NCBI GenBank assembly: GCA_900088475.1 | Contig: FLMG01003321.1 | Coordinates: 1 to 64,000 of the forward strand | Length of the DNA: 64,000 bases | Direction: 5' to 3' | DNA from: Hyphochytrium catenoides | Taxonomy: Eukaryota; Protista; Hyphochytriomycota | Part shown: positions 9,878 through 14,924 of the stretch, piece after piece | Layout of the letters: every line of letters starts with the position of its first letter | Numbering within the stretch: position 1 is the stretch's first letter | Position numbers and translations under genes: made by a program | The notes under the pieces: model-generated | What the model saw: only the letters and a program-made list of their open reading frames with translations | Told to the model about the DNA's origin: nothing | Databases searched by the model: none

Positions 9878-12800
9878 TCATGAGAAAGAATCGTCCCCTC
9901 TACCCAGCCTCCTAGCCAGTGTAGGTCGGGGACCCAACGGAGAGCCCTGGTGCAGGTCTGAAGGACGAGCCACAGGGGAGCGCAGGGGCTCTGGAAAGAA
10001 GACCGAAGTGTGAAGGCCCTCTCCACCGTTCGAATGAAGTTCATGATGCTCACTTCTCTGATTGCTTTCCATGCCCACTCGACTCGGCCCGATATAGTCT
10101 ATCCCCAAGGTTGGACACAACTGGGCCATCAAACCATCAAAGGAAGAGTCGAAGCTCACATCTTCCGCGAAGAGAACAAAGTCTTCCAAGGAGACACCGC
10201 ATGCTTCCACTGTGCACAGAGAGGAAAGCAGACACTCATCAGAAACCCGCAAGGGATATTTACAGAAAAAGGATATTTGCAGAAAAGCAAGGAGCAGAAA
10301 ATGGCATCAGCAAGGTCTTCTCCTGAGATGAGCAGAGCGCGAGCGCAGAACATGCGCTTAACGACCTTATAGAAGGTAAGGGTGTACGAGAGGGGATCAG
10401 ATAGCGAAGGAGTGGAACTTGGGGAACACACCACGCTTCCGCGTCCTTGCCTTACCGATCTCATTATCGGGAAACGCCAAGTAAATAGGAATGATGGGCT
10501 TTCCTTTATCCTCTGCAAAAGCCATCTGATCACTTACTAACTCTGTCTTAACACTCTCCCTGGACAAGACAACCAAAAAAGCTGAGCAGAGCAGGATGTT
10601 ATCCTTGGCCCTAATAATCCGCTCCTTCATGTCTGACGTCTCGGTCTGTGAGTCCAGGAAGCAGGAGACGCCAAGGTCGGAAAGAGAGGAGAACAGAAGC
10701 TCCACGAAGTCTAAGTGCTGATCCCCATGTGAGATAAAAACAAAGGACGTAGAAGTTCCTGAAAAAGGTGACGATTCCTCTCCTTCGCCATTAACAGGAC
10801 TGGTAGCAGCGCCAATGCTGAGATGCTTGCTGATAGCAGTACGAAGGCTCGAGGCGCTGCTCGATGTAAGCTCTTTCCTATCGAAACGAGTACGAATGTT
10901 AGCCTACTGAGGCGACCTGCAATCATAGACCAAAAGCTCCACAACCAGCGGATCTAAAAGCGCGAAGAGAACTGCAAAGCAATCCTCTGGGTACATATGC
11001 AATCGGCTTGTACTATAAGAAAAGGATAAACAGAACTGCACTAAGGATCTAATAGCGCATCTTGATTGGCAGGAGGTACTGGATAGAGAAGTCTCTCTAC
11101 CTGAGCACTCTTTGCGTTCTGCTCATCTCAATTTCATCTCGAAGACCGTCCACTAGGAGTCTGACTTGATCCTCGAAGACCCCATCCTCGAGCCCTATCA
11201 TTACAGTGCCGTCGGGGAGCATTGTCCGAGAGGAAATAGCGGAGACGAAGGGGACAATTTGGCGGGTGAAGAGATACACTTGCAGTTCCTCCCCAAGGCT
11301 CCGCGTATCACAGAAGCAGGCCACGACTGGAATGCGGGACCACATGCAAAGGGCAGGTGTTACAAATGAGTTGAAGTATACACTAGAAAGCATAGTAAGG
11401 AATGATAAATATAGGGATCATGCACTTCTTGCAAGGTAAAGGACAGACATAAGGGTGGATAGCAGAAGAAGAAGAACGAGAGCTAAACAGGTTGAGAACG
11501 AAACGTTCAAGCGGTAAGAAGCAACCAGAACAACTTCGTAAGGAGATGTATGTGCAAACATTGATGCTGTTTAGCTGAGACTACTCACTAGGGATTCCCA
11601 TTCTCTTAGCCAGTGCCAGCTCTTCCATACACTGCTCGTTACTAGGTAGATTGTCAGTGATCACGCAAAGAACCACCGAAGTAGTGCTGAGAACAGAATC
11701 AAGATTCTCCTTCCAGTCATTGGCCAACACTGGAACGGCATGTGAAGAAAGAGTGTGAGACGTCCAGCACGTTATGAAGGACTTCTCCAACTCTTCCTGG
11801 AGGCGTTGAACGAACTGTCGATGAGTAGGACAGTGCGTAATGAAGACATCTCGGCTTCCAATCTCACTCTTTATCGCATACTGCAGTTCCGCTACACAGA
11901 AAAAGGAACATATATATGGGAGGCAATGGGAGCGGTAAGCACAAGTAAAGAGTGTCCGCGAAGATAAAGACAGAGGGATTACCCGTCGCGGCGCATTCAA
12001 TAGCAGTCCTGCCTTCTCCGTTCCGTATGTGAACGTTGGCCCCGCTCTTGAGGAGAGAAATGGCTGTCTGCCTGTTGCTCTTCTTAATCGCCACATGTAG
12101 AGCCGTATCTCCACTGATTACAAAGCCTTCATTGATGTCTGCGCCGGCCGAAACGAGAGCAACAAAGATATCGCTGCCGATCTTCTCCACCTGCAAGGAC
12201 GACAAAAGAACCCAAGCACAATACAACATTAAATATTTAGGACAACATAACGGTGCACAAGAGGCAATCGCAAGAGACAGCCACAAAGTACCAAAAAAGT
12301 AGAGCATTGGTCCCTGAAGTCTTACCTCAGCTGCAGAACAGAAGACATTTCTCCCGCAGTAATCCACATGTGTAGGGTTCGCCTTCGCCTCCAGCAGCAT
12401 TCTAACGGCCTGGATATGATTATGCCGGGCTGCCCAGTGTAAGGGCGTACGGCCCAAGCTGTCTACTGCGTCCACCTGTGCACCAAATTCAAGCAAAAGG
12501 CGAACTGCAGATGCTTGCCCACTAATGGCGGCCCAGTGCAGTGGTGTTCTGGATACAAAGAGTGAAAGAGATGAGAGATTATGAGCTGTACGCCAGGACG
12601 GCTTGGATAAGACGTGTCATGAGACAAAACAATGGGCAAAGATGTGGAGAAACAGGCACTTTTGAGACGCTATTGGCTTCAGTGACTAGAAAGCAACATT
12701 TCATCCATCACCCTGCCTCTTCAACACAGGTGTCTGCAGCACTTACCGCTTATAAAAACCCGCCACTCCTTCGCCGAGAACGTCCGGGCTCTCACCAGCG

Positions 12801-14924
12801 CTGAGAATAGCATAGATTAGAGACAGATTTCCATTAGCAGCAGCGGCATGCAGGGGAGTGAGAGCAAAATCTCCTCCCCATTCTTCAAGGAGAGGAACCA
12901 CGGTGCTACGCTCCTTCAGGGCCGCATACTGTAGAGCTGTCATAGTCATCATAGTACCAGGCTTGGGAACTAGGAGGGGATTAGCTCTTCGAGTAAGCAG
13001 CTGCTTCACAATGACAGGGCTCTCTGCCAGAAAGAGAGGAGGGATTTGTGCCGCAGGATACCAGAAAGAAGATTGCGCAAGAACATTTACATCTGCTCCA
13101 GCATCCAAGAGCATATCCACGATGTTGCTTTGGCCGTTCACCACCGCCACATGCAGGGGAGAGACCAGAACAGTCGAAAGCATCTCCGAGTCCGTTCTTT
13201 CTGGGACAAACCAATGGGTGGCAAGATTGAATAGCTCTGCGAGGTTGAACCGGACCTTTCTGAGCTTGTCTAGCGCATTGACAGGGAACTTACGTTGGAG
13301 CAGTTCTGACAGGATGGCCGTGTTTCCTAGCACGCAGGCCCGGTGGAGAGGATTGTTGGTTGATGCAGCAAAGAGTCCGAACGTGATGCTAGGAGTCCGG
13401 TACATTTCCTGCAAGAACTGCTTGCCTAGGGTGTCATTTCCTCGATCTAGTAGGCCTATCAAGCGCTTAGAATCCTGGGCATTCACTGCTTCATATATCT
13501 GTTTACGAAGGAGCTTCCGCTCTTTGTGTTTGGTTCTAAGAGAGCGGAGGAAGGAGACCAAACCACGTCCGGTTCCTTTCTCATAGTTGTCCCGATAGCC
13601 CAGCTGAAGCTTCAAATGGCTCCGAAACTTGATAAAATCTGGGAATGGGAATGCTGAGTAAGACAACCTGCAGGATAGAGCGAAGGTGGCTAACGAAAGC
13701 TGGTGTCCATAGACAGAAGTGTTGAGGACACACTCCTTTCAAGGGGGAGACGTGTCAAGGACTATGAAGAAGAGAGAGGATACCGTCAACAATGAAGAGA
13801 GCTCAGACACCTTTTAGGAGAGACGAACCCACTGCGACCCTCTTCCCGTCTCTTCTCCATCCCTCCGATTGTGTGAGACCTCAGTCCTTGTTTGCTTACC
13901 TGAGATCTGTAAGAGGGTAACTATGAAGCCCGCAATAGTCCCAAGTCCCACCAGGAAACCCACTTCATCTTGGAAAGTAGCACATTGCGTTCCATCGCTT
14001 TCGACTGCAGTCCTAAAGATCCAGAGGGCGAGAAAGAACATGTATCCAAGCTCTAATATTACCAACAGTTCACAAAGTTGCAGATAGAGCGTACGATGGA
14101 TTTTAGGCGGATCTTGGTCTGAGATAGCATACAGCTTCGTAACAGAGAAGCCCAAAGCAGGGAACCCTAGCAGCAAGTTCAATAGACCCACAACGTTGAT
14201 CATGACGGCGTTTTCTATGCAGGAGTCTCCGTCTGCGGTCCCTCCCAGGCGCAAAAAGAGGACTATGGCAAGTATGACGGCCAGGTTGATGAGCACCAAA
14301 AAGAAGGTTCTAACCACTAGTCGACGGGAGAAGTAAGAGTTGAGAAGTTGACCCTTCCACAGCCTGAATGTAAGTTTCCCCTTCCTTGTCTGGGCCTGTC
14401 GCCGGATCCTCGCAATAATCTTGGCCTCCATGTCCTCTTCCTCATCCTCCTCAAGGACAATGGAGCCGCCTTCACTGCCTGCAGTGCTAATTTGATCGCT
14501 CTCAATGGGACTAACCGGGGGGAGCAGCAGCTCTCCACTTTCATCCTCGCCAGGAGAGGCCCTTGTCTCAAGAGGTGAAGAGGTGTGGTCATCTTCGTCT
14601 AGTCCAGAGGCTCCAAGAAGATCTGGGAGAAGAGACGCACGCCCAAAGGGTCCTGTAGGTGGCATATGGATAAGGGATGCTCTCCGTTATTATCCAAGAA
14701 GCAAATGCGCAGGAGGACGACAAAGACGAACACGGCGAGGCAAATAGAGGAGCCAGAGGGCAGTGGAGGAGAGCAAATTTCAAGCCAGGAACCGATCTAC
14801 CTGAGAGTGTGCGTGGAGACCTGGGTCCTGCCGGGATATCTTCTGCCACCGGTAAACTTTCAACAGTGGCGGTGAAGTCAGCCTGGTTCGCCCGGCGATC
14901 CTCCTGCTGTCGTTCGTCCCCCAT
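9878..14924 (-). CDS. Membrane protein with 4 TM helices, ankyrin repeats and two TIR (TIR_2-like) domains, about 9 exons
   Basis: Four hydrophobic segments at about 13900-14330. Ankyrin motifs NPLHRAC, SPLHVAV, TPLHAAA, GRTPLHWAA and GDTALHVA. TIR1: DVFITHC...FVQRLQEEL...VVLCVIT...CMEELALAKRMGIP. TIR2: FVFISHGDQHLDFVELL...FLVVLSRESVKTELVSDQMAFAEDKGKPIIPI. Splice phases are consistent where checked. Confidence 0.85.

Follow-up and report, generated by a model that had tools for sequence, protein, structure and literature searches.

Within a 64-kb stretch of DNA from Hyphochytrium catenoides (contig FLMG01003321.1, positions 1 to 64,000 of the forward strand; hereafter the window), we found a minus-strand locus that is very probably one intact, selected gene of ~1,123–1,128 amino acids (aa). 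It encodes a protein with four transmembrane helices (4TM), an ankyrin (ANK) array and two TIR domains (TIR1 and TIR2) and belongs to sub-branch B, our own name for one clade of the 4TM-ANK-TIR-TIR family. The design itself is already known, as full-length TM-ANK-TIR-TIR proteins exist across oomycetes, and the window gene adds one more to a family that has hardly been studied. In bacteria, plants and animals, TIR domains are immune enzymes that cleave NAD+; what they do in protists has, to our knowledge, scarcely been explored. Serious pathogens of crops and fish are found among the oomycetes, and 4TM-ANK-TIR-TIR, conserved across oomycetes, is the commonest membrane-anchored TIR design in that lineage. 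The locus extends the family to an intron-rich organism distant from any sequenced oomycete. What is new is an old sub-branch that lost the cyclisation tryptophan and kept the catalytic glutamate, together with evidence of selection from sequence variation.

Gene integrity and purifying selection

From six-frame open reading frames (ORFs) and the sequence itself, we built a gene running from 14665 to 9878 on the minus strand in eight exons, with GT-AG boundaries at all introns. Joined together, the exons comprise 3,387 nt, or 1,128 codons with zero internal stops, an exon 1 donor cut between G and GTAAGC giving this stop-free model. Residue numbers refer to the 1,128-aa model throughout. The joined translation was used for frame, hydropathy, charge and synonymous counts, and single exons or database homologues were used for searches, folds and family tests.

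The gene is under strong purifying selection. Compared with a second isolate (contig L001, from another sample, 97.4% identical across 7.9 kb), there are 57 exonic substitutions, of which 46 are synonymous and 11 non-synonymous (ratio of non-synonymous to synonymous polymorphism, pN/pS, 0.076; P = 4e-19). None of the 19 insertion or deletion (indel) events falls in the exons (3,383 nt), all 19 being found in intron and flanking sequence (4,489 nt; P = 2e-5). The non-synonymous changes are spread over N-terminus, TM module, ankyrin region, linker and tail, with none in the TIR cores; two of the nine differences in exon 1 are non-synonymous, and exon 5 has zero such differences.

An earlier, sequence-only reading of this DNA had assigned the TM, ANK and TIR exons to a single gene, and collinear matches, fused ORFs in relatives and the pN/pS value of 0.076 all bear this out. 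Full-length oomycete proteins gave collinear tblastn high-scoring segment pairs (HSPs) over exons 1–7, in the order 13636-12428, 12550-11984, 11886-11590, 11354-11100 and 10885-10457, with weak HSPs on the TM exon, where P0031, P0073, P0077 and P0080 matched 14608-13913 (E 1e-3 to 8e-6). Among relatives, P0003 and P0004 have a single ORF running from TM4 through the juxtamembrane motif into the first ankyrin repeats, P0005 (locus L003) holds ANK-TIR-TIR within one ORF, and annotated proteins of 977–1,298 aa hold all parts of the TM-ANK-TIR-TIR design. As dead copies are to be expected somewhere in a multigene family, the locus could have been a decaying pseudogene copy, or an artefact assembled from exons of separate genes. 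However, the low pN/pS without a single exon indel, the 1,128-codon frame without a stop, and a part order and junction spacing like those of the homologues all contradict such an origin, which is close to refuted.

At the 3′ end, our stop codon agrees with the gene end given in the sequence-only reading. Its start at 14924 is doubtful: it requires an extra 5′ exon (14801-14924), which has five substitutions in 124 nt relative to the second isolate. As four of the five fall at codon position 1, ATG 14665 is the likelier start. The candidate exon also varies faster than the introns (40 versus 22 substitutions per kb), and it is probably 5′ untranslated region or non-coding. Exon 2 has two possible acceptors, 13653 and 13638, which lie 15 nt apart and in frame; for 13638, which would give 1,123 aa, speak the spacing in homologues and a difference at 13648 that would otherwise be non-synonymous. 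Exon 8 gave no significant BLAST or Pfam match, and its motif FVLFAEDVSFDSSFDGLMAQL agrees in sequence and spacing with the strand-E/helix-E pattern of sub-branch B homologues.

Family membership, sub-branch B and the membrane module

A word search with the protein of locus L003 returned 65 relatives, and the named ones were almost all from oomycetes (Phytophthora, Nothophytophthora, Hyaloperonospora, Pythium, Globisporangium, Saprolegnia, Aphanomyces and Thraustotheca). Full-length members were recovered when the TM region was targeted in a second search, which added Peronospora and Bremia. Homologues in other stramenopiles, which had been considered possible beforehand, are found throughout the oomycetes. 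The window gene shows the TM landmarks of the 4TM-ANK-TIR-TIR family, its juxtamembrane motif followed by ankyrins, and collinear TIR1 and TIR2 domains with Glu in the former and Gln, within DQLAFAEDKGKPI, in the latter. Oomycete TM-ankyrin-TIR-TIR proteins such as P. infestans PITG_11666, P. cactorum PC116_g21441, and those of Peronospora belbahrii and Bremia lactucae ('TIR domain-containing protein') have the same order of parts and share with it the 4TM motifs, the loop cysteines, the juxtamembrane FxxFRxHxxxQxG, the TIR1 Glu and the invariant TIR2 helix. They span 977–1,298 aa as against ~1,125 in the window; identity is 30–58% in the TIR exons and only ~25% in the TM module. Whereas oomycete genes of the family have few introns, the window gene has seven.

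In a TIR2 tree and in alignments A1 and A2, the window gene falls into clade B (Shimodaira–Hasegawa-like approximate likelihood ratio test, SH-aLRT, 97), near the base, where it branches with a Logan sequence. Other members of this clade are P. sojae PHYSODRAFT_551299, P. kernoviae BBJ29_006073, Pythium insidiosum PINS_up002995 and Aphanomyces invadans proteins. Most members outside clade B have SEWC[LM]KEL in TIR1 and a GIGGGxVWREEI loop between strand B and helix B (BB loop), whereas both are missing from clade B. Four positions before the TIR1 Glu, the other branches have W, other members of clade B have L, S or D, and the window has Q.

Oomycete 'uncharacterized ankyrin repeat-TIR proteins' are mentioned in a review (Lapin et al. 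2022, PMC9153377), and a preprint (10.64898/2026.04.20.719644) describes protist TIRs, one oomycete included, that produce cyclic ADP-ribose (cADPR). Its Table S4 (row 122) lists D0N4Z2_1, from a protein of 1,179 aa (TIR 816-972, Glu892), as active with cADPR in E. coli. Although the sequence-only reading knew of no functional characterisation, cADPR has been obtained in E. coli with the first TIR of this paralogous member. D0N4Z2_1, labelled Phytophthora nicotianae, is like the window TIR1 the first TIR of an ankyrin-TIR protein with Glu in helix C; it keeps the Trp four positions before Glu and the Gly-rich BB loop, both absent in the window, and its activity is that of an isolated domain in E. 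coli. Table S2 of the same preprint, which is structure-based, gives GLN at the TIR catalytic site in many oomycete ankyrin proteins. It also lists some relatives from the Saprolegniales (Thraustotheca, Aphanomyces astaci) in which Ank-TIR is followed by an additional GT-B glycosyltransferase domain at the C-terminus; one of these relatives has Thr, not Gln, at the listed TIR catalytic site.

Some relatives carry misleading public names, namely P0007, P0021 and P0049 (TRP-CC, 'TRP Ca2+ channel family'), P0031 (Ankyrin-2) and P0072 (Palmitoyltransferase). The precomputed lists hold no ion-channel or DHHC Pfam match for these proteins, and their names look as if they derive from the ankyrin repeats. 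P0005 as called reads through two in-frame mini-introns in TIR1 (L003:8466-8528 and L003:8679-8738, ~50–55 nt each, GT...AG). This indicates that the source of L003 has very short introns and that ORF calls in the family can carry false insertions.

The N-terminal part of the window protein is acidic (21 D+E versus 3 K+R in residues 1–84), and a Kyte-Doolittle scan placed hydrophobic helices at ~114–138, 152–174, 194–218 and 237–255. Eight K+R and no D+E precede TM1, ten K+R follow TM4, and loops 1 and 3 are acidic. This positive-inside bias predicts cytosolic termini and places both cysteine-bearing loops on the same non-cytosolic side. Hydropathy, charge counts and alignment A3 agree with the acidic N-terminus, four helices and one Cys in each same-side loop of the sequence-only reading, and the positive-inside rule agrees with its cytosolic ANK-TIR part. 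Cys149 and Cys228 are conserved among family members in A3, which supports a putative disulfide between them. Further landmarks in A3 are NSFFAxRL before TM1, a Pro in TM2, QLCE in TM3 and FxxFRxHxxxQxG after TM4; the start of exon 2, FIKFRSHLKLQLG, fits this last motif and leads into the ankyrin array. Overall, the TM module is ~25% identical to family members. The protein had been called receptor-like; as its non-cytosolic parts are two loops of ~13–18 residues each, with no ligand-binding ectodomain of the Toll-like receptor (TLR) kind, this label is doubtful.

An AlphaFold2 (AF2) model of the TM module is a four-helix bundle of moderate confidence (predicted local distance difference test, pLDDT, 68.5). 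No specific structural relative emerged VIA-wide, where matches were generic four-helix bundles (Z ≤ 11.1); among known bundles, Z was 10.3 for synaptophysin, 8.6 for connexins and 7.9 for CD20. In the Atlas, shape matches mostly had TM < 0.5, and feature neighbours had no names. A representative search with the module, which is no survey, found the gene itself and three weak fragments (P0002–P0004, E 1e-4 to 2e-5). Two identities were considered for this region and rejected. TMEM164 was suggested for 13901-14413 (-) by a Pfam match of E 0.0017 whose 18.3 bits are below the cut-off of 25, and it had no structural support. A TRP cation channel does not fit four helices in place of six with a pore loop, and no ion-channel Pfam match was found in the window, P0073, P0076, P0077 or P0079.

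The ankyrin array proposed in the sequence-only reading is present by Pfam (Ank E 1e-17 to 5e-20; Ank_4 E 1e-21). Its count of 7–8 repeats was too low, as we counted 9–10 by eye, some of them degenerate.

Catalytic positions of the two TIR domains and possible mechanisms

Exons 5 and 7 both scored above the curated Pfam TIR_2 cut-off of 28 bits (38.1 and 39.6 bits), in line with the two TIR domains predicted earlier, and the language-model neighbours of exon 7 were TIR_2 clusters throughout. PDB sequence searches with single TIR exons yielded weak matches only (E 0.2–0.6). As introns split the TIR domains of the window gene, we modelled P0056:132-559, from the closest annotated homologue with both TIRs, a member of sub-branch B, with family alignment A2 as input. 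Its AF2 model has a mean pLDDT of 75.8 and values > 90 across most of both TIR cores. TIR1 of P0056 matched the SARM1 TIR (Z 15.9, root-mean-square deviation (rmsd) 2.3–2.8, 131–132 residues aligned) and also the RUN1 and RPV1 TIRs, and TIR2 matched SPARTA TIR-APAZ (Z 16.7, rmsd 2.0) and Hydra TRR-2 (Z 16.1). In both TIRs of the model, strand C is followed by a 7-residue loop and helix C, whose sixth residue is E in TIR1 and Q in TIR2.

The TIR1 Glu is kept in all 27 family rows that cover this part. The TIR2 Gln is invariant in 33 of 33 rows, within DQ[LM]A[FY]AE[DN][KR], and its helix is strongly conserved (DQ[LM]AFAEDKGKPI; family form DQLAFAEDKGKPI). We considered the Glu of a TIR2 'KTEL' as the catalytic residue and rejected it, because relatives have S, P, K, A or D there and the Gln five residues on is invariant and occupies helix-C position 6. 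With Gln995, TIR2 of the window lacks the catalytic Glu. TIR1 lacks an aromatic residue four positions before its Glu, having Gln788, so the 'tandem TIR' of the sequence-only reading is not a pair of equivalent modules. Unlike the GIGGGxVWREEI of other branches, the window BB loop contains no Gly, although loop requirements vary among TIRs. According to Manik et al. (10.1101/2022.05.07.491051), cyclisation requires the tryptophan in helix C (W204 in AbTir), and every tested cyclase has W, Y or F at that position.

Our first choice, held tentatively, is a mechanism in which the tandem TIRs would work as one unit with TIR1 as the only candidate enzyme, favouring plain NAD+ hydrolysis. The four-helix module anchors the protein in the membrane and leaves the ankyrin array and both TIRs in the cytosol. 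TIR2 would be a non-catalytic partner that gives the TIR-TIR interface required by the active site, and the ankyrin array would keep the unit inactive or recruit a partner. Hydrolysis, yielding ADP-ribose (ADPR) and consuming NAD+, would be likelier than cADPR synthesis because, in sub-branch B, TIR1 has neither the aromatic residue at −4 nor a glycine-containing BB loop. We thus rank hydrolysis without cyclisation first, pure scaffolding second and cADPR synthesis third, and predict that sub-branches would differ in product, with ADPR or none in one case and cADPR in the other. The account that best explains the data overall, a family gene with a tandem-TIR unit catalytic at TIR1 alone, has in our estimate an even chance of being right.

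Several points weigh against this account. The splice sites are predicted from the sequence, exon 2 has two possible acceptors, and exon 8 is placed solely through motif agreement. The modelled structure belongs to a homologue that is 31–56% identical in the TIR exons, not to the window protein, and a TIR1-TIR2 contact is unsupported by the model (predicted template modelling score, pTM, 0.49). The TIR1 Glu would be compatible with full activity despite the missing Trp; equally, without the Trp and the glycine-rich loop the domain could be wholly inactive. Biochemistry on the family amounts to a single datum, obtained in E. coli for a different sub-branch. A role in immunity or cell death is purely conjectural.

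A different possibility, which we consider rather unlikely, is a non-enzymatic scaffold, in which both TIRs would be assembly modules as in TLR/MyD88-type adaptors, nucleating a membrane signalling complex, and the ankyrins would bind a partner. This would suit the Gln at the TIR2 catalytic position, whose helix, one of the best conserved segments in the C-terminal half, fits an interaction surface, and a sub-branch B TIR1 devoid of the helix-C aromatic and the BB loop kept elsewhere; in 10.1101/2022.05.07.491051, AbTir is inactive when Gly or Ser residues of its BB loop are mutated, and the W131A mutant of L6 and the W82A mutant of ROQ1 no longer show NADase activity. However, the TIR1 Glu is kept in every covering sub-branch B sequence amid wide divergence, which would be unexpected if catalysis had been lost, and many eukaryotic TIRs with Glu are active (10.64898/2026.04.20.719644). 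The activity of D0N4Z2_1, which has the family architecture and Glu in common with the window, could instead suggest that TIR1 makes cADPR, feeding a Ca2+ or other second-messenger pathway at the membrane. We regard cADPR synthesis as improbable: D0N4Z2_1 has SEWCLKEL and a GIGGG loop and resembles P0038, of a different sub-branch, the window has Gln for Trp where all known cyclases are aromatic, and the TIR1 of Aphanomyces astaci (Table S4, row 123 of 10.64898/2026.04.20.719644) bears no 'active' mark. More speculative still, sub-branch B may be a distinct variant, a membrane unit of Trp-less TIR1 and Gln-TIR2 without cADPR that would act as an NAD+-depleting suicide switch or as a receiver of TIR nucleotides. 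If so, the sub-branch B unit and cyclase-type paralogues of the same genome would amount to a producer/receiver TIR signalling pair in a eukaryote, similar to bacterial Thoeris.

Known TIR systems resemble parts of the window protein. SARM1, an ARM-SAM-TIR NADase, likewise has a repeat array N-terminal to an enzyme-type TIR and gave the best structural match for P0056 TIR1, suggesting repeat-domain auto-inhibition as a plausible logic for the window protein. In contrast to SARM1, the window protein has ankyrin and not ARM repeats, is an integral membrane protein, has a second TIR with Gln and lacks an equivalent of SARM1 W638; no exon had a SAM or ARM Pfam match that would indicate the ARM-SAM-SAM-TIR architecture of the SARM1 family. 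Toll-like receptors are also membrane proteins with a cytosolic TIR, but have one TM helix and a large leucine-rich repeat (LRR) ectodomain, whereas the window protein has four helices, no ectodomain, ankyrins and two TIRs, and Pfam gave no LRR match. The RPS4/RRS1 TIR heterodimer pairs an inactive TIR with an active one, which is the idea proposed here for TIR1 and TIR2. SPARTA TIR-APAZ, the best structural match of P0056 TIR2, and Thoeris ThsB share the TIR fold. In RPS4/RRS1, SPARTA and Thoeris, the TIRs are on separate chains or oligomerise upon nucleic-acid or ligand sensing, and the window protein has no such sensor domain.

Feature coordinates and genomic surroundings

Table 1. Exons, candidate 5′ exon, membrane module and key residues of the window gene (positions in the window).
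Feature	Position	Strand	Content	Evidence
Exon 1	13900..14665	-	ATG 14665; acidic disordered N-terminus, basic juxtamembrane stretch, four-helix membrane module	Open frame
Exon 2	12747..13653	-	Juxtamembrane motif FIKFRSHLKLQLG, linker, ankyrin repeats 1-5	Pfam Ank E 1.3e-17; tblastn
Exon 3	12326..12548	-	Ankyrin repeats 6-7 and start of repeat 8	Enclosing ORF: Pfam Ank_4 E 1e-21, Ank E 5e-20; collinear tblastn HSPs
Exon 4	11983..12190	-	Last ankyrin repeats	Pfam; tblastn HSPs stop at 11984
Exon 5	11589..11891	-	TIR1 strand A to helix C	Pfam TIR_2 38.1 bits
Exon 6	11101..11326	-	TIR1 strand D to helix E; motifs ELQVYLFTRQIVPF, DGLRDEIE	tblastn 34-51% identity to family members; alignment A1
Exon 7	10456..10877	-	Ser-rich linker, TIR2 strand A to strand D	Pfam TIR_2 39.6 bits, E 8.9e-10
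Exon 8	9878..10209	-	TIR2 strand E and helix E, motif FVLFAEDVSFDSSFDGLMAQL, poorly conserved tail, TGA stop 9878-9880	Frame continuous
Candidate 5′ exon of the sequence-only reading	14801..14924	-	ATG 14924, spliced in frame to 14651	
Four-pass membrane module	13901..14326	-	TM1-TM4	Hydropathy, charge bias, alignment A3
Cys149	14219-14221	-	Loop 1, motif DGDSC	
Cys228	13982-13984	-	Loop 3, motif GTQC	
Gln788	11632-11634	-	Site of cyclisation tryptophan	Exon 5; family table
Glu792	11620-11622	-	TIR1 catalytic position, motif CMEEL	Exon 5; family table
Gln995	10526-10528	-	TIR2 catalytic position, VSDQM, motif VSDQMAFAEDKGKPI	Exon 7

There is one family copy within the 64-kb window, and its neighbours are ordinary, comprising EF-Ts, eIF4E, a PALP enzyme, Gpi16, CFAP161 and an amidohydrolase. 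About 1 kb separates the TIR gene from a divergent gene starting near 15703 (+); this space takes in the candidate 5′ exon (14801-14924) and 14925-15700. This head-to-head neighbour, at 15703-17175 (+), encodes an enzyme that depends on pyridoxal phosphate (Pfam PALP, E 7.5e-21 for the ORF 16603-17175), and the PALP neighbour is also present on contig L001. Gpi16/PIG-T, at 30832-32700 (-), is a single intronless ORF of 622 aa in an otherwise intron-rich region (Pfam E 4.8e-107). Its best named relatives, from Mucoromycota and plants, are only ~30% identical, indicating an organism without a close sequenced relative for Gpi16. Further ORF fragments match EF-Ts (8356-8916, +), eIF4E (4626-5078, -), an amidohydrolase (45262-46773, -) and CFAP161 (36474-37529, +), the last of which implies a flagellated stage.

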